DNA of 64,000 nucleotides from contig NC_086098.1 of the NCBI RefSeq assembly GCF_963921235.1, positions 155,496,001 to 155,560,000 on the forward strand. The letters run 5' to 3'. The translations under genes and the position numbers were made by a program. The number at the start of each line of letters is the position of its first letter. Position 1 is the first letter of the stretch. The stretch comes from Mobula hypostoma (Eukaryota). Shown here in pieces: positions 3,560 to 59,171 of this stretch. Under the pieces are notes generated by a model. That model had not been told where the DNA came from. It worked only from the letters and a program-made list of their open reading frames with translations, and ran no database searches.

Positions 3560-5730
3560 AGATAGAGGAGGAGTAAAAGTGGGAGGGTGAGGGGTTTATG
3601 GAAAGTACCCGAGTAATCAAAGAAAACATCACAGTTGCACTCAGGAGAGAAATAGCGGAGGGGTCAGGCACTGTCAATTTGGGTAGAACTCAGGAATAGG
3701 AAGGGTGCAATCACACAGATAGGATTGTACTACAGACCGCCCCCCCCCCCATAGCCACCAGGACATTAAGGATCAGATATGTAATCAGATTAAGGAAATC
3801 TGTAAAAGTAATGGGGTTGTTGTCATGGGCGATTTCAACTTCCTTTATATAAACTGGGTCCTTCTTAGTGCAAGGGGGTTAGATGGGGCAGAATTAAGAA
3901 GAGTTAATTGGAAACACCTTTTTTTCTGACAAGTCCACATCAGACATGTGGAGGTTGTTTAAATGTCAATTGCATAGAGTACAGGAAAGGCATGTTCCTG
4001 TTAGAAGGAAGGACGGGGATGGAAAGATAAGAGAACTTTAGATTTCCAGCGAGGTGATGGATTTATTCAAGAAGAAAAAAGAAAAGTATATAAAACTTTG
4101 GAATTTAGGATCAAATGAAGCACATGGATATAAAGAAGCCAGAAAAGAACTGAAGAAGGGATTTAGGAAAGCCAGGAGTGGCCAGAAAACATCTTTGGCA
4201 AGTAGGATTAAGGTTAATCGCAATGCATTCTATACATGCGTCAAGAGTAAGAGGATAACTAGGGAGATAGTGGGACACTCAAGGGTAAAGGGGGGAGAAT
4301 TTGCTTGGATGCAGAGAGTGTGAGTGACATACTTAACGAGTACTTTTTTAAGGATATGGAGAACCAGGAGATCAGTGCTGAGTGTATAAGTATGGTAGGG
4401 CATTTAGAGGTCAAGGAGAAGGAAGTGTTGGACTTCCTAATGAGTGTTATTGTGGATGTCCTCATGGCCTGATGGGATTTACCCCCAGGTTATTGAAGAA
4501 GGCAAGGTACGAGATTGCTGGGCCCTTGACCAGTATCTTCATGCCCTCTCTAGCCACAGGCAAGGTCCTGGAGAACTGGCGAGTGGCTAACGTTGTACCT
4601 CTATTTACGAAGGGAACAAGGGAAAATCCTGGGAACTATAGATAGTGAATCTCGTGTTAGTTGTAGGGAAATTGCAGAGAAAATTCTTAGGGATAGGATA
4701 TATGAGCATTTGGAAGCTCATGGCCTAATTAGAAAAAGCCAGCATGTTGTGTCTTACTAACCTGATTGAGCTTTTTGACAAGGTGAGGAGAGAGATTGAT
4801 GAAAGTAGGGCAGTGGATATTGTCTATATGGATTTTAGTAAGGCATTTGACGAAGTCCCTCATGGGAGACTAATCCAGAAGATCCATGGTGAATTGGCTG
4901 TTTGGATCCAGAACTGTTTGCTCATAGAAGACAAAGAGTAGTGGTTGAAGAGACTTATTTGAGCTAGAGATCTGTGATTAGTGGTGTTCCACAGGGATCT
5001 GTGCTGGGATCTCTACTGTTTGTGATGTATGTAAATGACCTGGATGAAAATGTAGATGGGAAGGATAATACCAAGACTGGTGGAGCTATGGATAGTGTAG
5101 AAGTCTGGCAAAGAGTACAGTGTGATGTAGATCATTTGAAGATGTGGGCAGAGAAATGGCAGATGGAGTTTAACCCAGATAAATGTGAGGAGTTGCACCT
5201 TGGTAGGGCAAATGCAAGACCCTTAACAGTATCGCTCAGCAGAGAGATCTTGAGGTTCATTGCTTCTTGAAAGTGGCTACACAGGTCGATAAGGTGATTA
5301 AGAAGGCTTATGGAATGCTTGGTTTTATTAGTCAAGGCATTGAGTTCAAAAGTCAAAAGGTTATGTAGCAACTTTATAGAAATCTGGTTAGGCCACATTT
5401 GGAGTAATGCATACAGTTCTGGTCGCCCCACTGTAGGAAGGTATGTTGTGGTGAAAGGGGTGGGTGCAGGGGGGATGTGAGGGATAAGTGTTTTACTCTG
5501 AGAATCGTGGATGCCTGAAATGCGCTGCCTGGTATGGAGGCAGAGACTTTTAGGAGAGGTTTGGATAGGCACATGGGTATAAGGAAAATGGAAAGGTATG
5601 GACATTATGTAGGTAGAGGGATTGGTGTTTGGATGTTTTGAATGGCATTTTAGCTGGTCGGCAGAGCATTATGAGCTGAATGGCCTGTTCCTGTGTTGTA
5701 CTGCTCCCATGTTTTATGTACATAGGATAG
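3560..5730 (+). mobile_element. Degraded CR1-clade LINE ORF2 (endonuclease, RT and 3' end) in a HIRA intron
   Basis: Broken ORFs with WVELRN..YYRPP, CLTNLIE.FD, VDIVYMDFSKAFD.VPH, SGVPQGSVLG and KWQMEFNPDKC, ending in a CR1-type 3' tail. Confidence 0.9.
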
Positions 5731-13761: not shown

Positions 13762-16700
13762 TTGGGGGGTGGGAATCAAATTAAAGAGGCTAGGCGAGAG
13801 GAGGTTAGTTCACAACAGGGGGATGGGAACGAGTGCAGAGAGACAGAGGGGTGTAAAGTGAGGGTAGAAGCAAAAAGTACTAAGGAGAAAAGTAAAAGTG
13901 GCAGGCCGACAAATCCAGGGCAAGCATTAAAAAGGGCCACTTTTCAACATAATTGTATAAGGGCTAAGAGAGTTGTAAAAGAGCGCCTGAAGGCTTTGTG
14001 TGTCAATGCAAGGAGCATTCGTAATAAGGTGGATGAATTGAAAGTGCAGATTGTTATTAATGATTATGATATAGTTGGGATCACAGAGACATGGCTCCAG
14101 GGTGACCAAGGATGGGAGCTCAACGTTCAGGGATATTCAATATTCAGGAGGGATAGACATGAAAGAAAAGGAGGTGGGGTGGCGTTGCTGGTTAAAGATG
14201 AGATTAACGCAATAGAAAGGAAGGACATAAGCCGGGAAGATGTGGAATCGATATGGGTAGAGCTGCGTAACACTAAGGGGCAGAAAACGCTGGTGGGAGT
14301 TGTGTACAGGCCACCTAACAGTAGTAGTGAGGTCGGAGATGGTATTAAACAGGAAATTAGAAATGTGTGCAATAAAGGAACAGCAGTTATAATGGGTGAC
14401 TTCAATCTGCATGTAGATTGGGTGAACCAAATTGGTAAAGGTGCTGAGGAAGAGGATTTCTTGGAATGTATGCGGGATGGTTTTTTGAACCAACATGTCG
14501 AGGAACCAACTAGGGAGCAGGCTATTCTGGACTGGGTTTTGAGCAATGAGGAAGGGTTAATTAGCAATCTTGTTGTAAGAGGCCCCTTGGGTAAGAGTGA
14601 CCATAATATGGTGGAATTCTTCATTAAGATGGAGAGTGACATAGTTAATTCAGAAACAAAGGTTCTGAACTTAAAGAGGGGTAACTTTGAAGGTATGAGA
14701 AGTGAATTAGCTAAGATAGACTGGCAAATGACACTTAAAGGATTGACGGTGGATATGCAATGGCAAGCATTTAAAGATTGCATGGATGAACTACAACAAT
14801 TGTTCATCCCAGTTTGGCAAAAGAATAAATCAAGGAAGGTAGTGCACCCGTGGCTGACAAGAGAAATTAGGGATAGTATCAATTCCAAAGAAGAAGCATA
14901 CAAATTAGGCAGAAAAAGTGGCTCACCTGAGGACTGGGAGAAATTCAGAGTTCAGCAGAGGAGGACAAAGGGCTTAATTAGGAAGGGGAAAAAGATTATG
15001 AGAGAAAACTGGCAGGGAACATAAAAACTGACTGTAAAAGCTTTTATAGATATGTAAAAAGGAAAAGACTGGTAAAGACAAATGTAGGTACCCTACAGAC
15101 AGAAACAGGTGAATTGATTATGGGGAGCAAGGACATGGAGACCAATTGAATAATTACTTTGGTTCTGTCTTCACTAAGGAGGACATAAATAATCTTCCAG
15201 AAATAGTAGGGGACAGAGGGTCCAGTGAGATGGAAGAACTGAGCGAAATACATGTTAGTAGGGAAGTGGTGTTAGGTAAATTGAAGGGATTGAAGGCAGA
15301 TAAATCCCCAGGGCCAGATGGTCTGCATCCCAGAGTGCTTAAGGAAGTAGCCCAAGAAATAGTGGATGCATTGGTGATAATTTTTCAAAACTCGTTAGAC
15401 TCTGGACTAGTTCCTGAGGATTGGAGGGTGGCCAATGTAACCCCACTTTTTAAAAAAGGAGGGAGAGAGAAACCGGGGAATTATAGACCGGTTAGCCTAA
15501 CGTCGGTGGTGGGGAAACTGCTGGAGTCAGTTATCAAAGATGTGATAACAGCACATTTGGAAAGCGGTGAAATGATCAGACAAAGTCAGCATGGATTTGT
15601 GAAAGGAAAATCATGTCTGACGAATCTCATAGAATTTTTTGAGGATGTAACTAGTAGAGTGGATAGGGGAGAGCCAGTGGATGTGGTATATTTGGATTTT
15701 CAAAAGGCTTTTGACAAGGTCCCACACAGGAGATTAGTGTGCAAACTTAAAGCACACGGTATTGGGGGTAAGGTATTGATGTGGATGGAGAATTGGTTAG
15801 CAGACAGGAAGCAAAGAGTGGGAATAAACGGGACCTTTTCAGAATGGCAGGCGGTGACTAGTGGGGTACCGCAAGGCTCAGTGCTGCGACCCCAGTTGTT
15901 TACAATATATATTAATGACTTGGATGAGGGAATTAAATGCAGCATCTCCAAGTTTGCGGATGACACGAAGCTGGGTGGCAGTGTTAGCTGTGAGGAGGAT
16001 GCTAAGAGGATGCAGAGTGACTTGGATAGGTTGGGTGAGTGGGCAAATTCATGGCAGATGCAATTTAATGTGGATAAATGTGAAGTTATCCACTTTGGTG
16101 GCAAAAATAGGAAAACAGATTATTATCTGAATGGTGGCCGATTAGGAAAAGGGGAGGTGCAACGAGACCTGAGTGTCATTATACACCAGTCATTGAAAGT
16201 GGGCATGCAGGTACAGCAGGCGGTAAAAAAGGTGAATGGTATGCTGGCATTTATAGCGAGAGGATTCGAGTACAGGAGCAGGGAGGTACTACTGCAGTTG
16301 TACAAGGCCTTGGTGAGACCACACCTGGAGTATTGTGTGCAGTTGTGGTCCCCTAATCTGAGGAAAGACATCCTTGCCATAGAGGGAGTACAAAGAAGGT
16401 TCACCAGATTGATTCCTGGGATGGCAGGACTTTCATATGAAGAAAGACTGGATGAACTGGGCTTGTAATCATTGGAATTTAGAAGATTGAGGGGGGATCT
16501 GATTGAAACGTATAAAATCCTAAAGGGATTGGACAGGCTAGATGCAGGAAGATTGTTCCCGATGTTGGGGAAGTCCAGAACGAGGGGTCACAGTTTGAGG
16601 ATAAGGGGGAAGCCTTTTAGGACCGAGATTAGGAAAAACTTCTTCACACAGAGGGTGGTGAATCTGTGGAATTCTCTGCCACAGGAAACAGTTGAGGCCA

Positions 16701-22559: not shown

Positions 22560-23125
22560 TCAGAATCAGAACCAGGTTTATTATTACTGGCATGTGTCGT
22601 GAAATTTGTTAACTTAGCAGCGGCAGTTCAATGCAATACATGATATAGAAGAAGAAGAAGAAAAATNNNNNNNNNNNNNNNNNNNNNNNNNNNNNNNNNN
22701 NNNNNNNNNNNNNNNNNNNNNNNNNNNNNNNNNNNNNNNNNNNNNNNNNNNNNNNNNNNNNNNNNNNNNNNNNNNNNNNNNNNNNNNNNNNNNNNNNNNN
22801 NNNNNNNNNNNNNNNNNNNNNNNNNNNAACAGAAATAATATATATTCAAAAGGTGAGGTAGTGTTCACGGGTTCAATGTCCATTTAGGAATCGGATGGCA
22901 GAGGGGAAGAAGCTGTTCCTGAATCGCTGAGTGTGTACCTTAAGGCTTCTGTATCTCCTACCTGATGGTAACAGTGAGAAAAGGACATGCCCTGGGTGCT
23001 GGACGTCCTTAATAATGGACACTGCCTTTCTGAGACACTGCTCCCTGAAGATATCCTGGGTACTTAGTGGGCTCCATCTTGGGTACGAGCCTACAAAATG
23101 TACAACCCTCTGCAGCTTCTCGTTT
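22560..23125 (-). mobile_element. L2/Rex-like LINE 3' end spanning the assembly gap
   Basis: HPGHVLFSLLPSGRRYRSLKVHTQRFRNSFFPSAIRFLN* followed by an AT-rich tail. Confidence 0.75.
22667..22827. other. Assembly gap (161 N)
   Basis: Run of n directly in the sequence, inside the low-complexity tail of a LINE. Confidence 0.99.
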
Positions 23126-36766: not shown

Positions 36767-36772
36767 TTTAAT
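36767..36772 (-). terminator. Candidate polyA signal ATTAAA of the Ig light chain
   Basis: TTTAAT on + strand about 30 nt past the C-exon stop. No closer AATAAA seen. Confidence 0.5.
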
Positions 36773-36800: not shown

Positions 36801-37135
36801 CTAAGATGGCGTACACTCCGATCTCCGGATGCTTCGCTTCAACTGAGACACGAGAGACGCGTGTGTAACCCCGCAAGTGTACACTTCGTGTGAGTTCCAC
36901 TCGGAGGCGGTCAGGGTGAGGTAACTGCTCAGTCTGTAGGTCTGGTCGGTGTCCTTCACTGCTCGAGATGTCTTAACACCTGCGTTGACCACCATGCCGT
37001 CGGTGCTCCAGGAGACCGTCACCCCTTCAGGGTAAAAATTATTGACTAGGCACACCAGAGTCGCCATCTTTCCTTTAGTGATCTGATCGGACGCCGGCAG
37101 GAGAAGGGAGACCTTAGGGCTGGACAATTCTTGGG
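36801..37135 (-). CDS. IGLC: Ig light-chain constant exon, lambda/type II-like (SQELSSPKVSLLLPASDQITKGKMATLVCLV...SSYLTLTASEWNSHEVYTCGVTH...RSECTPS*)
   Basis: (T)n-tacAG acceptor, phase 1 matching J. C1-set Cys-Trp-Cys, terminal interchain Cys, no transmembrane segment. SDQIT..MATLVCLV and ASEWNSHE match recalled shark type II (lambda) C regions. Confidence 0.95.
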
Positions 37136-37719
37136 CTGTAAAAAAAAAGAGATTTGGAGGAACTAGATAATGAGGGTGTTCATTTGAAACGGAAAGAAAA
37201 GAATTGTTTGAGAGGAGATCCTTAGCATTTACCAATGCCCCGGGACCGACGGTGGAATATTCTCTAAATAATTTGTTAATGTACCTAAGATTTTGGGTAT
37301 GAAGTACATTGACAGAGTTTCCTTGGGGCACAGTTTAGAATTTTCCCAGAAAGTTAATATTCATTTACATCACCATGTAACTACAGTCTTGCTGAGATTT
37401 GCTTCCCGACAATCGGTCACCATAAATGTACAATAGCGGACTGTAACGAACGAAGAAAAGATAACCAACATATAAAACGTCCGGTATGGTAATCGGGCCG
37501 GCATTATAGCGCGGATAAATGGCCCGCTTTGGTCATTCCATTTAAAATTCTAGTTGTAATATAGATAAAAATTAAAATCTCATTCCACGTTCTCTCTGCT
37601 CCCATTCTGCTTGAAGTGCTTCCATAAAAAGGCCCCATAGACTATCTTGTCTGCCCTATGATAAACGATAAATAACTAGCTGTCTATTACGAAGATACAC
37701 AGCATTCCAGAATTCAGGG

Positions 37720-38420
37720 TTTCTTGAAAACTCAATCGTAATGCCTCCGCAGTCTTTTCAGCTATCTCCTTCATAACCCTGGGCTGTAGTCCATCTGGTC
37801 CAGGTGACTTATCTAACTTTAGACCTTTCAGCTTCAGTCTCCTTACTAATAACGAGTATAAACTCCTCTGGCCCCTGACACTGTTGCAGTTTTAGCATAC
37901 TGCTGGTATCTTCCACAGTAAAGGCTGACGCAAAATACTTATTAAGCATCATTTTCAAGCAGTCTAATATCCATTCTCGCCTTTCTTTTACTCTGCGTAC
38001 ATCTGAAAATACTTCCGGTATCCTCGGTATTTATTTTATTTGCGAGCTCACCTTTTTTCATCTTTTCTCACCTTGTGGCTTTTTGTAAATTGCCTTCTGT
38101 TGGGTTTTAAAAGTTTCCGAATCCGCCAAATTACTACTAACTTTGGCTGTATTTTATGCCTCTATTTTGCTTTTATGCTGTCCTTGACTTTTTTTGTCGG
38201 CCATTATCCTCCCTTTAGACTACTTTTTCATCTTTGAGATGTATCTATTCTGTGCTTTCCGAACTGCTCCCAGAAACTGCTTTTCTGCAGTCATTCCTGC
38301 TCCAATCAATGTTGGCCTGTTCCTCTATCATGCCTCTGTAAATGCTTTTACTTCATTGTAGTACTGATGTATCTGACTTGAACTTCTCCTTCTCAAACTG
38401 TATGGTGAATTTTATCTCTT
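37720..38420 (-). mobile_element. Degraded CR1 ORF2 fragments in the J-C intron
   Basis: Reverse complement resembles the CR1 linker (K.DKSPGPDG.QPRV) seen in the young CR1. Confidence 0.65.
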
Positions 38421-38834
38421 GCTATCTTACTCCTTTAAACAAAAAAGTGTATCGACCTCTACGGAGAAAGTGTGGATGAACCATGTTGACACTGAAGCTG
38501 AGTCTTCTTGCAGTGTCTAATACAGGAAAACAAAGTAGGACAGGTCGGGGGTTGGTGCGGGGGGAAGGAAGAAGAGTAATATTTAGCCTCTGCATCTCAG
38601 ATGGAGTCCCGAAGAGAAAGGTCTCAAAGTTAACGATTTTCATTGAGTAGTTCGAATGATTAAGACATAACCCATGGCGCTGGAAACCCATCAGGTTCTC
38701 CATCAAAACAACAAGATTTATATACAAGGGATACCTTTAAAAACGTCACCATATGCTACATATATGAAAAAAATATTAATCCACGGTACCAAATATTCAA
38801 TCGTACGTCTATCCGACGGATTAAGGTTACTTAC

Positions 38835-39194
38835 ATAACACCGTTAGCTTCGTTCCAGTTCCGAAGTTATATGTGTTACTGGAGCTTACCCACACACCGC
38901 AATAGTAGTTCGCTTCATCTTCTTTTTGAACCCCAGTGATGGTTAAATATCTGGAGTTGAGTGACGAGTCACTTCTACCGGAGAATCGATCTGGAGTACC
39001 TGATGCCCTGACTAGGTCTTGAGAATTATGGCGCAGGAGATACCGAGGAGGAGCATTTTCAGTCCTTTGCTGGTACCAGGTTATTAAAGCGTTTCCCATG
39101 ACGACGCCTTTCAAAGTACAGTAAATTTCGACGTTCCCTCCCGAGTCAGTAGAAACAGATAGTGGTTGGCTTAGAATAACTTGTGCCTTTGATT
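38835..39194 (-). CDS. IGLV: Germline-joined VJ exon of an Ig light chain (ESKA|QVILSQP...IYC...TWYQQ...YYCGVWVSSSNTYNFGTGTKLTVL)
   Basis: ttttAG acceptor and GTAAGT donor. 360-nt open frame with Cys23, Trp41, D..NYYC, an 11-aa CDR3 and FGTG. No heptamer/nonamer between V and J. Confidence 0.96.
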
Positions 39195-39303
39195 CTAAAA
39201 GGGAAGACAGGCAATTTTGAAATATCTCAGAATATTTAATATAGTGCTTTAACCTTAGTCACGGTGCGCTCAACAAGGAAGGAAAAGCTAACGACATACT
39301 TAC

Positions 39304-39352
39304 CTGAGACCAGAAGCACTATCAGAATGACAACACCAAGACGCTTACACAT
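39304..39352 (-). CDS. IGLV: Ig light-chain leader exon (MCKRLGVVILIVLLVS)
   Basis: ATG at 39352, hydrophobic signal peptide, phase-1 GTAAGT donor, 109-bp intron to the V exon. Confidence 0.93.
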
Positions 39353-39428
39353 GGCGAAGAATTTAATAAACCCAGAACTGCTCATGACACGCCTCGGAAA
39401 TTGATCGATTATCTGTGTCCCAATCTCC

Positions 39429-39469
39429 TTTTATCAGCCTTATGAAGAAGGATCCAAATTTATGCAAAT
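39429..39469 (-). promoter_or_regulatory. Ig light-chain promoter: octamer ATTTGCAT (39462-39469) and TATA-like GATAAAA (39429-39435)
   Basis: Octamer in light-chain orientation about 110 nt upstream of the ATG, the canonical IgL promoter position. Confidence 0.88.
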
Positions 39470-40479
39470 CCTTAACCAAAGGGCAGAACACGATTGGAGC
39501 ATCTGAACTGAGGTCAAGTCAAACGCAAGCTCTGTAAGGAATGACGTTAGTGCGTCATGCACACGGAGCTATACAATTCTGAATACGGTGTTCTGACTTT
39601 CTGCAGATAGGGGTTATGCCATATTATATATTACATCTTCGGGGTTGGCAACTAATTGCTAGCTGCAAAATCAGATTGTATATTAATAATGAATAAATAA
39701 GTCGCGTGTTCAAAGCGAATCCCATGTCATGAATTTCAAATAAAGCAGTCTTGGAAATGCGAACGCTGCGTTTGCGGTGTTGATTCAATTATATGACATT
39801 AATAACGCTCTATTCTATTTTCGATTGCGATTAAGCATATTATGTTCAATTCGAAGGACTGTGACCGATAGTGCACAACAGGGCAGATTATTTCCATGGA
39901 GATTAAAGCATATTTAATATGTATTTTTGTCTTGCGGGATCATTCTCACGAACAGAGCAGCTGGGGAGCGGTTTGTTCACTTGCAACCCATTCCAGTCTG
40001 TTGACGTCCTGAACAATACCAACGTAAAATGTACTTTTTTTTTAACTGCTTACGCTTTTCTTTGAGCATTCGGAGCAAATGCTATTCCAGCGCGCTAATT
40101 TATCGCTGAAGTAGGGGTACATTCTATACACAATATTATTATTATTTAAAATGGGTCAGATATTTGTTCCTGCAAGTTAACACGGGAGAAATATTCTCAC
40201 TGGGCTGGAAATGGTTCGCCATATTTTAGCTTCAAAAATCAATGCTTGGCTTTTCAGGATATCGGTGACGAGAAATATCTTCACTCAGAAGCTAAATATT
40301 TCAGTAATTCTCTACCCAAGAGGCATGTGGAGGCTTGATCTCTGAATAATTTGAAGGCAAGTGTAAATTGATATACGATTACTTTATGAAAGCGGCGCGG
40401 CAGTCGTAACATTATTGAATGATCACAATCCAAACGATTCTACACCTTCCGATCGTAGATAACCTCTTTTTCTTTGTAA

Positions 40480-49985: not shown

Positions 49986-52900
49986 TAGGGTTTCTCAACA
50001 GGGATTCCGCGTGAGGTCGCCAGGAATTCCTCGACAGACCGTGATAAAAAAAACATAGTTTTTTTGAACTTCGAGAAATTCGCGGTTCTAGCGCTTGCAG
50101 CCGTGGGCAGTGACCGAACAGCCCCGTTAGCAATCTCGTTAGAGGTCGAGATTGCTCTCAGCCCAGTGTGGCAGTGCGCGGCAGCACCACGTTTATTTGC
50201 TTGAGACCATTCTCAGTTTTTGACGCGAGATAGGGAAAGCGTTGATAATTTGTGAGCGCTGTATTGCACGGAGGGGAGGACGGTAGGCTGATAATTGGTG
50301 AATGCTGTATTGCACGGAGGGGAGGACGGTAGGCTGATAATTGGTGAATGCTGTATTGAACGGAGGGGAGGACGGTAGGCTGATAATTGGTGAATGCTGT
50401 ATTGCACGGAGGGGAGGACGGTAGGCTGATAATTGGTGAATGCTGTATTGCACGGAGGGGAGGACGGTGGGCTGTTAATTGGTGAATGCTGTATTGCACG
50501 GAGGGGAGGACGGTAGGCTGTTAATTGATGAATGCTGTATTGAACGGAGGGGAGGACGGTAGGCTGATAATTGGTGAATGCTGTATTGCACGGAGGGGAG
50601 GACGGTAGGCTGATAATTGGTGAATGCTGTATTGAACGGAGGGGAGGACGGTAGGCTGATAATTGGTGAATGCTGTATTGCACGGAGGGGAGGACGGTAG
50701 GCTGATAATTGGTGAATGCTGTATTGCACGGAGGGGAGGACGGTGGGCTGTTAATTGGTGAATGCTGTATTGCACGGAGGGGAGGACGGTAGGCTGTTAA
50801 TTGATGAATGCTGTATTGAACGGAGGGGAGGACGGTAGGCTGATAATTGGTGAATGCTGTATTGCACGGAGGGGAGGACGGTAGGCTGATAATTGGTGAA
50901 TGCTGTATTGAACGGAGGGGAGGACGGTAGGCTGATAATTGGTGAATGCTGTATTGCACGGAGGGGAGGACGGTAGGCTGATAATTGGTGAATGCTGTAT
51001 TGCACGGAGGGGAGGACGGTGGGCTGTTAATTGGTGAATGCTGTATTGCACGGAGGGGAGGACGGTAGGCTGTTAATTGATGAATGCTGTATTGAACGGA
51101 GGGGAGGACGGTAGGCTGATAATTGGTGAATGCTGTATTGCACGGAGGGGACGACGGTTGGCTGATGAGGAGCGCGAAGTGCGTTTTCCGAACTTTGAAT
51201 GGGATTCGCCCAACTTGTGCTGTGACGTCAGCCTCTTCCTTATCACTTAACTCCCCTAACTTCTCTTTACAGGCGCCGAATGACTAAGGGAAGCGAACAA
51301 ACCACCAATGTAGCGAGAATTGGAGAGAACTTTCCATTCTAAAGAAGGAAGTTTTAGACTCAGCTTTTGGCTTTGCTGTTGTTGTAAATTTTGCAAAGGT
51401 GGATTGTGTAGTTTAGAAGTGAATTGTATTGTGAACCCGTCCTGCCGAAGGGCTTTGGCTCCTAACGTCGACTGTACTTTTTTCCCCATAGATGCTGCCT
51501 GGCCTGCTGAGTCCCTCTAGCATTTAGTCTGTGTTGCTCCGATTTCTAGCACCTGCAGATTTTCTTATGGTTCTGTATTGTGAAGTTTTCGTATTTTCTG
51601 CGGTTTATTTTTTCGTTCAGTTATGTATTATGCCTTTCTTATTATATAATCCGTCTTTATAATGGAAGTTACTTTTCAGTGGGTTTTACATGGATTGGTG
51701 ATACAAGTTGTCCTATTCCATTGTGTCTAGTCTGTGACAAACAACTTGTAAATGCAGCAATGGCTCCAGAAAAACTGAGAAGGTACTTAACTACAAATCA
51801 CAGCCGTATGACACGTAGAAAGCTAATTATTGTACGCGGCTATTGGAAGCTTAAAACAAACAGAGTAAAGCTTTTGTTAATAAAGTCAGTCAGTAAAAGG
51901 TTTCGGAAGTAAGCTATTACCCACAAAAAGAAACGTCACACAGTTGGTGAGAACTTAACAATGCCAAGATGTAAAATTATAATGGGTAAAATTCTAGGGC
52001 AAGGTGCAGTACGAAAAATTGAAAAGATTTCACCTACAAACGGTATGATAGTCGATGTATTGTTGACATGTCACATGATACTGAAGAGGTTTTGTGTGAT
52101 AAACTGAAAAACAACAGCTTCTCTATCAAGGTTGATGAGTCAACAGATTTCTCCAATAAATGTCATGTTGTAGCATTTGTAAAATTTATAAATGATGGTG
52201 AAATTCAAGAAACCTTTTTTTTATCGTTGCAAAGAGCTGACCGAAAAAAGAATAGGCTTAGATATATTTAATGTCTGGTCTTCATATCTGGAAACAAAGT
52301 GTCTATCTTGGGGGAACTGTGTTGACGACTGTACTGATGGTGCCCCATCAATGGTTGGTTCCATGAGAGGTTACGTTTCTCTTGTGAAACCCGCTTTTAC
52401 TGGCTGTCTCTGGAAAACCAACTCGTTAGCCCCTCGCTAATAACTATTGGATTCCGCGGTGATAAACCCATCTTTCTCCAGCTTCGTACGACTAGGGTGT
52501 ATACAACTTTGGTACAGGCAAATCCTGGTTGTGTGAATGCTGTATGATTCGCTGCCCTCGGCAGGAAATAACAGATCGTACACTGCACACAATTTATAAA
52601 ATATATTTAAGAATGTTGATTTAAACAAATAGTTATTAAATGAAAGAAAGAAAATAAAAACAAAAAGAGCCCATTACTCTAAAACAGTCAAATGTGTTCT
52701 TAAGTTGGAGCTCATCTTGAACTTGTCTGTCACTCACGCGCTGGACCCTAGGTCTGGTGAAAGCACACATCACTATCCGAGCGTCGCTCGAAATCCATCT
52801 CGGACAAACGGGTCTCCCACGGGAGTATTGGTTCTTCCTTCTGAAGCCATTCATCTACACAAAGACCTTATGCAACAGGCACGGCAGCCTCAGCCATCTT

Positions 52901-55740: not shown

Positions 55741-56403
55741 TTATGACATCAGACTCCAATTTAACAACCTTCTATTATTCTTCATCTTAGTTAGAAATAT
55801 CAACGGATTATAACCCATGTAAACTACAAGTGATCTCTGGGCAACAGAAAGATTTCGAGGCCTCTGCACATAGACCTCAAAATGTTGTAAGATCAGAATA
55901 AGTGCTAATAATTCCTTTTCAACAGTTGAATAATCTTTCCGGTGTACATTAAATTTCTTTGAGAAATAAGCTACTGGATGTTCAATGTCATTCACTTCTT
56001 CCTGTAACAGTACTGCACCAGCAGCTTCATCACTAGCGTCTGTTGCTATAGAAAATAGGTTTGAAAAATCTGGTGCTTTGAGCACAGGATGATAACACAG
56101 GATGATAACACAGGATGATAACACAGGATGATTTTCAGACGTTCAAATGCCTCCTGGCAATGGTCATTCCATACAAATCTTTCACTCTTCCCTAGGAGAT
56201 TTGTTAGGGGGAGAGCGACGTCAGCAAAGTTCTTACAGCACTTATAATAATACCTAACCATTCCTAAAAACCTTCTTAAAGCTTCCTTGCCAGTCGGAAC
56301 AGGAACTTGAGCAACAGCTTGAACCTTGGCCTGTCCAGGAGCCAGGTGGACCTGGCCAACTACATAACCCAGATATGTAACTGTGGCATGGCCAAACTCA
56401 CTT
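55741..56403 (-). pseudogene. Gypsy RT C-terminal part and RNase H relic
   Basis: EFGHATVTYLGYVVG, LRRFLGMV.YY, TDASDEAAGAVLLQ, HPVAYFSKKF, YSTVEKELLAL. Confidence 0.9.
56083..56132. repeat. 13-bp tandem repeat CACAGGATGATAA x about 3.8
   Basis: Units start at 56083, 56096, 56109 and 56122. Confidence 0.95.
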
Positions 56404-59171
56404 TTATGTAGTGGACGGGAGACATTGACCAAGATGGCATGCAACTTAGACAGCATCCTCTTTTCAGACACTACCGTGAGAGAGTCCAGTTCCATCCCCA
56501 CAACATCACTGGCCTTAAGAATGAGTTTGTTGATTCTGTTGGTATCTGCTACCCTCAGCTCGCTGCCCCAGCACACAACAGCAAACATGATAGCACTGGC
56601 CACCACATACTCGTAGAACATCCTCAGTATCGTCCGGCAGATGTTAAAGGACCCCAGTCTCCTCAGGAAATAGAGACGGCTCTGACCCTTCTTGTAGTCA
56701 GCCTCAGTATTCTTTGACCAGTCCAGTTTATTGTCAATTCGTATCCCCAGGTATTTGTAATCCTCCACCATGTCCACACAGACCCCCTGGATGAACATAG
56801 GGGTCACCAGTACCTTAGCTCTCCTCAGGTCTACCACCAGCTTCTTAGCCTTTTTCACATTAAGCTGCAGATAATTCTGCTCACACCATGTGACAAAGTT
56901 TCCTACCGTAGCCCTGTACTCAGTCTCATCTCCCTTGCTGATGCATCCAACTATGGCAGAGTCATCCTAAAACTTCTGAAGATGACAAGACTCTGTGCAG
57001 TAGTTGAAGTCCGAGGTGTAAATGGTGAAGAGAAAGGGAGACAAGACAGTCCCCTGTGGAGCCCCAGTGCTGCTGATCACTCTGTCGGGCACACAGTGTT
57101 GCAAGCATACGTACTGTGGTCTGCCAGTCAGGTAATCAAGAATTCATGACACCAGGAAAGCATCCACCTGCATCGCTGTCAGCTTCTCCCCCAGCAGAGC
57201 AGGGCGAATGGTATTGAATGCACTGGAGAAGTCAAAAAACATGACCCTGACAGTGCTTGCTGGCTTGTCCAAGTGGGCGTAGACACGGTTCAGCAGGTAG
57301 ACGATGGCATCCCCAACTCCTAGTCGGGGCAGGTAGGCGAACTGGAGGGGATCTAAGTGTGACCTGACCATAGGCCGGAGCAGCTCCAGAACAAGTTTCT
57401 CCAGGGTCTTCATGATGTGGGAGGTCAATGCCACCGGTCTGTAGTCATTGAGGCCGCTGGGGCGCGGCGTCTTCGGCACAGGGACGAGGCAGGACGTCTT
57501 CCACAGTACAGGAACCCTCCGGAGCCTCAGGATCAGGTTGAATACATGGCGAAGTACTCCACATAGCTGAGGGGCACAGGCTTTGAGCACCCTGGTACTG
57601 ACACCATCCGGTCGTGCAGCCTTGCTTGGGTTGAGACGTTTCAGCTGTCTTCTCACCTGTTCAGCTGTGAAGCCCACCGTGGTGGTTTCGTGTGGGGAAG
57701 GGGTATAGTCATGATAGCAGGGTGCGGGACTGTGAGGAGGGGTAGGGGGGGAGAGTGCAATAGGTGTTGGTTGGGTCCGACAACAGATGGCTCATGTGGG
57801 GGATGGGCAGGGGTCACAATGTCAAATCTGTTAAAGAACAGGTTAAGTTTATTGACCCTGTCCACACTGCGTTGAGCTCCTCTGTTGCTAGTTTGCCGGA
57901 ACCCAGTGCTGGTCCTCACCCCTTCCAGACCTCTTTCATGTTGTTCTGCTGGAGTTTCCACTCAAGCTTCCTCCTATACCTGTCTTTAGCCTCCCTGATC
58001 CTGGCTTTCAGGTCCCTCTGTATTGCCCTCAGCTCCTCCCTATTTCCATCTCTAAATGCCCTCTTTTTAGCGTTCAGGATGTCCTCAGTGTCCTTTGTCA
58101 CCCATGGCTTGCTATTTGAATATCAAAGGACAGTTCTTGTCGGATCATTGCAGTCCACACAGAAGTTGATGTAATCAGTGAAGCACTATGTGAGCCCATC
58201 AATATCCTCTCCGTGTGGCTCACAGAGTGCCTGCCAGTCTGTCACCTCAAAACAACCCTGGAGCGCTTCATAAGCCTCCTCCGACCATTTTCTCACTGTC
58301 CTCGAGGTTGCTGGTTTACTCTTCACCAGGGGCACGTAGCAGGGTTTTAGATGCACCAGGTTGTGATCTGACCTTCCCAGGGAGGGATGTACACAACAAC
58401 CATAATTGCATGCGAGATTTCCCTTGACAAATAATAAGGCCGGTGTCCAACAGCAAAAAGTTCAATATCCGGGCTACAAACACGTTCCTTGATAGTAATA
58501 TGCCCAGGATTGCACCATCTGTTGTTTACGAGAACCGCCAGCCCCCTCCTTTACGCTTACCGCTCTCAGTGCAATTCCGGTCAGCCCGAACGGTCTGGAA
58601 GCTCTCTATGGAAACGCTTCGATCGGGTATGTCCTCGTTCAGCCACGTCTCAGTAAAGCACATGACACTGCTCTCCCGAAATGTTCTCTGACTCCTGACA
58701 AGCGCCGTCAGTTCGTCGATTTTATTCCCAGGCGATCTTCACATTTCCCATGATGAGAGAGGGGAGACACGGCTTATAACTTCTCTTCTCCATAAGCCTC
58801 TGTTATCCCGACCCGGTCCTCTTCCCTCGCCTTTTTGATTCCCCTCTGCATCCTCTGATGTTTTCCTCCAGATTTCAGCCGGGATGTCCGTTGCTCTGTT
58901 TGCTAAACCGGGGGACATGAGCGCAATCAGTTGGTCCCTGGAATACGCAATGCGGCCATCCTGCTGCCACGCTAACGAGACGTGTCCGAATGTAACTATT
59001 TCCAGCGCTAGAAACAAGTAAAACTCTCTCCACCAGCGTGTTAGAGAGGGTGCAGCTCCAACGTGCTACCGTGAGAAAAAAAATACAACAAATAACTAAG
59101 TTAAAAAGTTTAGAAGTAAAAAACTACGGAGCAACTGTAACAGGCTGCATGTACGACCGGCGCATGCGCAC
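56404..59171 (-). mobile_element. Rex1/Babar-type LINE with intact 5' end, EN and RT relics, 3' end deleted
   Basis: YSRDQLIAL N-terminus, CFTETW, GGGLAV (EN); DYRPVALTSHIMK, QFAY, FFDFSSAFNTI (RT). Its end matches 6286-6377 and then breaks off. Confidence 0.9.

Follow-up and report, generated by a model that had tools for sequence, protein, structure and literature searches.

The subject of this analysis is a single immunoglobulin (Ig) light-chain gene on the minus strand of a 64-kb stretch of DNA (the window), the source of which is most probably the devil ray, Mobula hypostoma. We are highly confident that the gene is a functional Ig lambda light-chain minicluster made of leader (L), joined variable and joining (VJ), and constant (C) exons (L-VJ-C), in which an ancient germline fusion has turned the V and J segments into a single inherited exon. 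Its spliced protein is 100% identical over 258 amino acids to RefSeq XP_062929520.1 ("immunoglobulin lambda-1 light chain-like," Mobula hypostoma) and differs at 4 amino acids from the Mobula birostris protein. RefSeq therefore already has a gene model, but its generic automatic name carries neither the germline-joined state nor the lineage, which is lineage A of the lambda-like lineages A to D described below.

Read in the direction of transcription, with all elements on the minus strand, the gene begins with a CCAAT box (39493 to 39497) lying 5' of the Ig octamer ATTTGCAT (39462 to 39469). All five aligned promoters (manta lineage A, Pristis lineages A and B, and Heptranchias lineages A and C) carry this octamer unchanged, and the same alignment shows the CCAAT box to be invariant with respect to the four other elasmobranch lambda clusters. 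A TATA-like ATAAAA (39429 to 39434) lies inside a block, GATAAAAGG, that is kept in lineage A. The leader exon (39304 to 39385; 82 nucleotides [nt]) offers two in-frame ATGs, the first at 39385 and the second at 39352, and it ends at a GTAAGT donor from which intron 1 (39195 to 39303; 109 nt) runs to TTTTAG. The fused V-J exon (38835 to 39194; 360 nt) is one open frame holding framework region 1 (FR1), YYC, a third complementarity-determining region (CDR3) of 11 codons over the former V-J joint (38866 to 38898), and a J-derived FR4 that translates as FGTGTKLTVL (38836 to 38865). Intron 2, between J and C (37136 to 38834; 1,699 nt), opens with GTAAGT and closes with TTTTTTACAG, which has an ACAG end. 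The C-lambda exon (36801 to 37135; 335 nt including the TAG stop at 36803 to 36801) encodes a C-terminal Cys for the disulfide that would link heavy and light chains, and it is followed, 28 nt past the stop, by an ATTAAA poly(A) signal (36767 to 36772).

A first-pass annotation made from the letters of the window had described an octamer promoter, a leader, a 360-nt VJ exon, a 1.7-kb intron, and an intact C exon, with canonical splice sites and matching phases and with V running in frame into J without a recombination signal sequence (RSS). We found every element where it had been placed. All splice sites are GT..AG, and the phases agree, being 1 at both introns. Scripted splicing gives a coding sequence of 777 nt, with a predicted product of 258 amino acids, or 247 if the second ATG is used. 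Pfam matches the spliced product to V-set (1e-17) and C1-set (2.8e-27), and translation and alignments show the Cys-Trp-Cys core of V, the FGxG of J, the intradomain Cys pair of C, and the C-terminal Cys all to be present. A heptamer/nonamer scan of both strands from 38700 to 39300 detected no RSS, whereas the same scan, as a control, recovered both RSSs in a split cluster of Heptranchias (L003). Searches of the 64-kb window with the leader, V, and C parts (tblastn) gave no further Ig exons above noise. With these Pfam domain scores and the identity to an independent RefSeq model, the gene structure is far beyond chance.

Germline state, transcription, and selection

The first-pass annotation had named a somatic allele captured in the assembly as the finding that would speak against it, and the evidence speaks for the germline form. 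In run X1 (DNA, same species), a 2,420-nt contig crosses 38161 to 39700, and with it the whole VJ exon, unbroken at a depth of 9.85, compared with 8.3 to 9.6 in single-copy flanks. In run X5 (DNA, sister species), a 2,386-nt contig covers the same span, also unbroken. V and J likewise lie in a single exon in the orthologues of the sawfish Pristis pectinata (L001) and the sevengill shark Heptranchias perlo (L002). Because DNA contigs stand at flank depth in two species and the orthologues are joined, the assembly holds no somatic allele. CDR3 is 11 amino acids long, with a recognizable common motif, in 10 of 10 lineage-A sequences (the window, M. birostris, Hemitrygon, Pristis, Narcine, Heptranchias, Heterodontus, Pristiophorus, Cetorhinus, and Mustelus). 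The joined status in Hemitrygon, Heterodontus, and Mustelus is taken from protein models only, and that in M. birostris is taken from a protein model and the X5 contig, on the assumption that the sister species (organism B of the coded runs) is M. birostris, as V>M at 38841 suggests. CDR3 is thus conserved across species and therefore is no somatic joint. The V-J fusion is inherited, not somatic.

Spliced L-VJ-C transcripts, which had been proposed as a check on the gene, were found in two species. A 706-nt contig of run X13 (RNA-like, same species) aligns to 36879 to 37135, 38835 to 39194, and 39304 to 39392, with both predicted joints (37135/38835 and 39194/39304) exact, and the same two joints occur in run X9 (sister species). 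Neither joint is present in the two DNA runs. Since the intron-free joints are missing from DNA, the reading of these RNA-like contigs as L-VJ-C transcripts is convincing. At the 3' side, RNA-like depth ends between 36756 and 36869, a range that includes the poly(A) signal. Of the three RNA-like runs of the same species, all from one study, only X13 contained sequence words of the VJ exon; four runs of the sister species contained them as well. This distribution fits tissue-restricted expression.

The gene is under purifying selection throughout. Ratios of nonsynonymous to synonymous divergence (dN/dS) were estimated by the Nei-Gojobori method for pairs among manta, sawfish, and sevengill shark, with dS reaching 0.7 to 0.9 in VJ. 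They were 0.20 to 0.30 for the VJ exon (38835 to 39194), 0.19 to 0.21 for its frameworks, 0.19 to 0.53 for its CDRs, and 0.24 to 0.45 for the C exon (36801 to 37135). The earlier description of a functional gene encoding a fixed light chain is therefore borne out by frame, transcripts, and selection as far as function is concerned, but "fixed" holds for junctional diversity only; any later diversification would come from hypermutation. As a separate observation, run X9 contains low-depth V-region contigs with 2 to 6 differences at 38842 to 39005 beside the main contigs (depth, ~940 to 2,150). These minor contigs could be hypermutated transcripts, alleles, or errors, which contigs cannot separate.

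Lineage placement and joined and split relatives

Homology searches and two maximum-likelihood trees place the lambda-like chains of chondrichthyans in two groups. The first has the topology (C,(A,B)); the second, clade D, includes the chimaera light chains. The two combined form a chondrichthyan clade that is sister to sturgeon plus tetrapod lambda. The window gene belongs to lineage A, a starred clade (100/98 in one tree) of sharks and rays in which the ray members form a starred subclade of their own. Sharks and rays also occur together in lineage B, which dates the A/B duplication to before their divergence. A single lineage-A orthologue per species is seen in sharks and three ray orders, and the VJ exon of the window gene stands at single-copy depth. 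Among solved structures, the two domains come closest to human V-lambda and C-lambda, and the best database relatives outside cartilaginous fish are all lambda. The trees behind this placement include neither a kappa or sigma outgroup nor any authenticated type II/NS3 reference. A homology search for classically named type II/NS3 proteins that could anchor the lineages gave only automatic "lambda-1-like" names. Ohta et al. (2025; PMC12227049) identify XP_051887747 as sawfish IgL-lambda. XP_051887748, which directly follows it in number, belongs to lineage D and has a D-type neighbor; their lambda reference is therefore probably of lineage D as well.

Alignment shows that members of lineages A and B from every species have a long CDR2/FR3 form, the same as that of human V-lambda 5 and 6, so this form is not peculiar to the window gene. 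Other features set the rays apart. In Mobula, Hemitrygon, Pristis, and Narcine, an in-frame ATG lies 33 nt 5' of the shark start codon, so that the leader is 11 amino acids longer, and ATG 39352 of the window is homologous to the shark start codon. Sharks have no ATG at the site of the upstream one, although the surrounding nucleotides are otherwise conserved. Ray members also have an extra Pro in FR2.

Joined clusters occur in several lineages, namely, A (Mobula, Pristis, and Heptranchias), B (Pristis, L004), and D (two neighboring Pristis genes, L005). In contrast, lineage C of Heptranchias perlo is split (L003, positions 4238 to 4877; CM068661.1, protein P0018). Its V ends at a CACGGTG heptamer followed by a 23-bp spacer and a ACCAAAATT nonamer, and its J lies ~230 bp downstream behind a nonamer, an 11- to 12-bp spacer, and a heptamer. 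This V-23/J-12 orientation is of the lambda type. Reviews report all lambda (type II/NS3) genes to be germline-joined in every cartilaginous fish studied (PMC4279169, PMC5192425), with only six lambda loci in the nurse shark. The general statement of the first-pass annotation that cartilaginous-fish lambda clusters are V-J joined thus agrees with the reviews but not with the lambda-clade cluster of Heptranchias, which is still split.

Because joined lambda genes are reported from all cartilaginous fish studied, the window gene is a further instance of a known arrangement, one that has been described in the sandbar shark, horned shark, skate, ratfish, and nurse shark (PMC4279169, PMC5192425). 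Compared with these type II/NS3 clusters as the reviews describe them, the gene is alike in its VJ-C minicluster with its own octamer promoter, in-frame inherited V-J fusion, and single C exon, in its lambda-like V, J, and C, and in its expression without junctional diversity. It differs in coming from a new species and in belonging to sublineage A, where it is single copy with one orthologue per species; the ray lineage-A genes differ further in their 11-amino-acid N-terminal extension and the extra Pro in FR2. The joined NS4 (kappa) genes of the nurse shark (PMC2193156) resemble it in having RAG-type germline joints and a retained octamer and, in some cases, in being in frame. However, the NS4 joints are recent, species specific, and found among many split paralogues, whereas the joint in the window is common to sharks and rays. 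Tetrapod and sturgeon lambda, the nearest nonchondrichthyan relatives, have the same FGxGTKLTVL J motif but are split genes that rearrange somatically. The surrogate light chain (VpreB plus lambda5) is also a nonrearranging lambda-like chain, but it consists of two polypeptides with unique tails, whereas the window gene encodes V, J, and C in one ordinary chain; translation gives a single L-VJ-C frame and no extra non-Ig tail.

In the sawfish (Pristis pectinata, CM019871.1), the lineage-A and -B clusters (L001 and L004) stand head to head, ~12.6 kb apart, at ~10.22 to 10.24 Mb, and that chromosome carries two lineage-D clusters (L005; ~10.88 to 10.90 Mb) at a distance of ~640 kb. The devil-ray gene has no Ig neighbor in the window, which extends 36 kb from it on one side and 24 kb on the other. 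When A and B of the same species were compared (pairs P0028/P0030, P0009/P0007, P0011/P0008, P0003/P0004, P0019/P0005, and P0125/P0010), C-domain identity was 98% in Narcine, 92% in Heterodontus and Pristiophorus, 83% in Pristis, and 80% in Mustelus. The C domains of A orthologues share 66 to 75% between species, and the V domains of A and B within a species share 46 to 55%. This pattern points to concerted evolution of the C exons of neighboring A and B clusters, as judged from these identities. Mobula is the exception, with 68% identity between its A and B C domains.

Origin of the fusion and alternative explanations

Sister lineage C and the bony-vertebrate relatives are split, and the joined state of lineage A is therefore derived. 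Most likely, the fusion was made by RAG in germ cells acting on a split V-23/J-12 lambda cluster, as the split sister lineage and bony-vertebrate lambda suggest; joining of this type has been reconstructed for the nurse-shark NS4 genes (Lee et al. 2000; PMC2193156). Because lineage A has one-to-one orthologues in sharks and three ray orders, the V-J fusion is most likely older than the shark-ray split. The gene is transcribed from its own CCAAT/octamer/TATA promoter, is spliced from L to VJ to C, and encodes a complete light chain, presumably able to pair with a heavy chain, and the missing RSS suggests that no RAG cutting would be needed to make it.

Other explanations have to be weighed against an old germline fusion in a working gene. 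If blood or spleen was sequenced, the assembly could a priori represent a somatically rearranged allele from lymphocytes, the true germline locus being split, and one DNA contig (X1) does depart from the window at two CDR3/J positions. Yet the joined form stands at single-copy flank depth in two species, the sawfish and sevengill-shark orthologues are joined likewise with a CDR3 of the same length, and this CDR3 is kept across species, unlike any somatic joint; the cross-species data already refute the idea, which retains a vanishingly small probability. The inherited joint might instead belong to a decaying relic that is out of use as a light chain, given that some joined clusters are pseudogenes and that joined NS4 genes are barely expressed in adults (Lee et al. 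2000; PMC2193156). We consider this very unlikely, however, in view of an intact 258-codon frame with canonical splice sites and a conserved promoter, dN/dS values well below 1 over a synonymous divergence of 0.7 to 0.9, and spliced RNA-like contigs in two species. It is more improbable still that the unsplit VJ exon is primordial and was never invaded by the RAG transposon. Nonrearranging VJ-C1 genes such as UrIg do exist in sharks (PMC12227049), but the window gene lies within the lambda clade, canonical V-23/J-12 RSSs persist in sister lineage C, the bony-vertebrate relatives rearrange, and RAG-type germline joining is documented in sharks (Lee et al. 2000; PMC2193156).

A further possibility, which we entertain only tentatively, concerns function: the product may be an innate-like or surrogate-type light chain, invariant and devoted to a conserved partner or ligand, whose gene has stayed single copy since before the shark-ray split. 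This chain might, for example, pair with germline-joined heavy chains in early life, and in myliobatiform rays the gene might have escaped the C-exon homogenization that ties A to neighboring B elsewhere. One orthologue per species, a VJ exon at single-copy depth, a fixed CDR3 length, and CDR dN/dS below 1 are in its favor, as is a precedent in the nurse shark, where the neonatal IgM1gj pairs by preference with a germline-joined sigma-2 chain (PMC5192425, PMC4279169). Nevertheless, CDR identity is 49 to 60%, compared with 63 to 73% for frameworks; conservation in lineage B is equal or higher, so the conservation pattern is not special to the window gene; the gene is built as a complete V-C light chain, not as VpreB/lambda5; and the proposal draws on sequence rather than on developmental expression or pairing.

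Several points weigh against the reading that we prefer, that of a functional lambda gene with an anciently fused VJ exon. The X1 contig has two nonsynonymous changes relative to the window, Lys>Asn at 38848 (J) and Val>Ile at 38889 (CDR3). It shows just one further difference in 1,540 nt, and the RNA-like X13 contig equals the window at both positions; judging from these contigs, the two differences are probably allelic. The read evidence consists of assembled contigs of coded runs in which the label "RNA" is a guess, and the gene product is predicted from DNA and RNA-like contigs. Translation would start at either 39385 or 39352, and because the RNA-like contigs end 0 to 7 nt upstream of the first ATG (5' ends at 39392 and 39384), the second may be the one used. 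Finally, the lambda assignment would follow from nearest relatives and from the RSS type of split sister lineage C, the trees having no kappa or sigma outgroup.

By itself, one more joined lambda cluster carries little weight, since such clusters are textbook knowledge for cartilaginous fish and the gene model is already in RefSeq. The fused gene gains modest interest from its relatives. Its joint, being common to sharks and three ray orders, ranks among the oldest germline V-J fusions that can be dated, and joined lineage A together with a sister lineage that has RSSs forms a natural before-and-after pair for germline remodeling of antigen-receptor genes by RAG. Such a light chain, single copy, conserved, and presumably RAG independent, may also be considered for a role in innate-like or neonatal antibody function.

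Other features of the window

The J-C intron harbors a very high-copy interspersed repeat (37668 to 38465) with a decayed frame on the gene strand that resembles a long interspersed nuclear element (LINE). Its summed contig depth in the DNA runs of two species reaches 2.8e5, compared with ~9 in the flanks. An Rfam search of the whole window at the gathering threshold gave no match, and the other long open reading frames of the window match in Pfam only LINE endonuclease and reverse-transcriptase fragments. One LINE remnant on the plus strand (13762 to 16468) retains an endonuclease frame (Exo_endo_phos, 4e-12) and a reverse-transcriptase frame (RVT_1, 6e-33), and another on the minus strand (56046 to 57677) retains a reverse-transcriptase fragment identified by Pfam. 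The window also contains a run of 161 N, an assembly gap or mask (22667 to 22827), and a minisatellite (50243 to 51166) in which a 46-bp unit is repeated 20 times with 96% matching.

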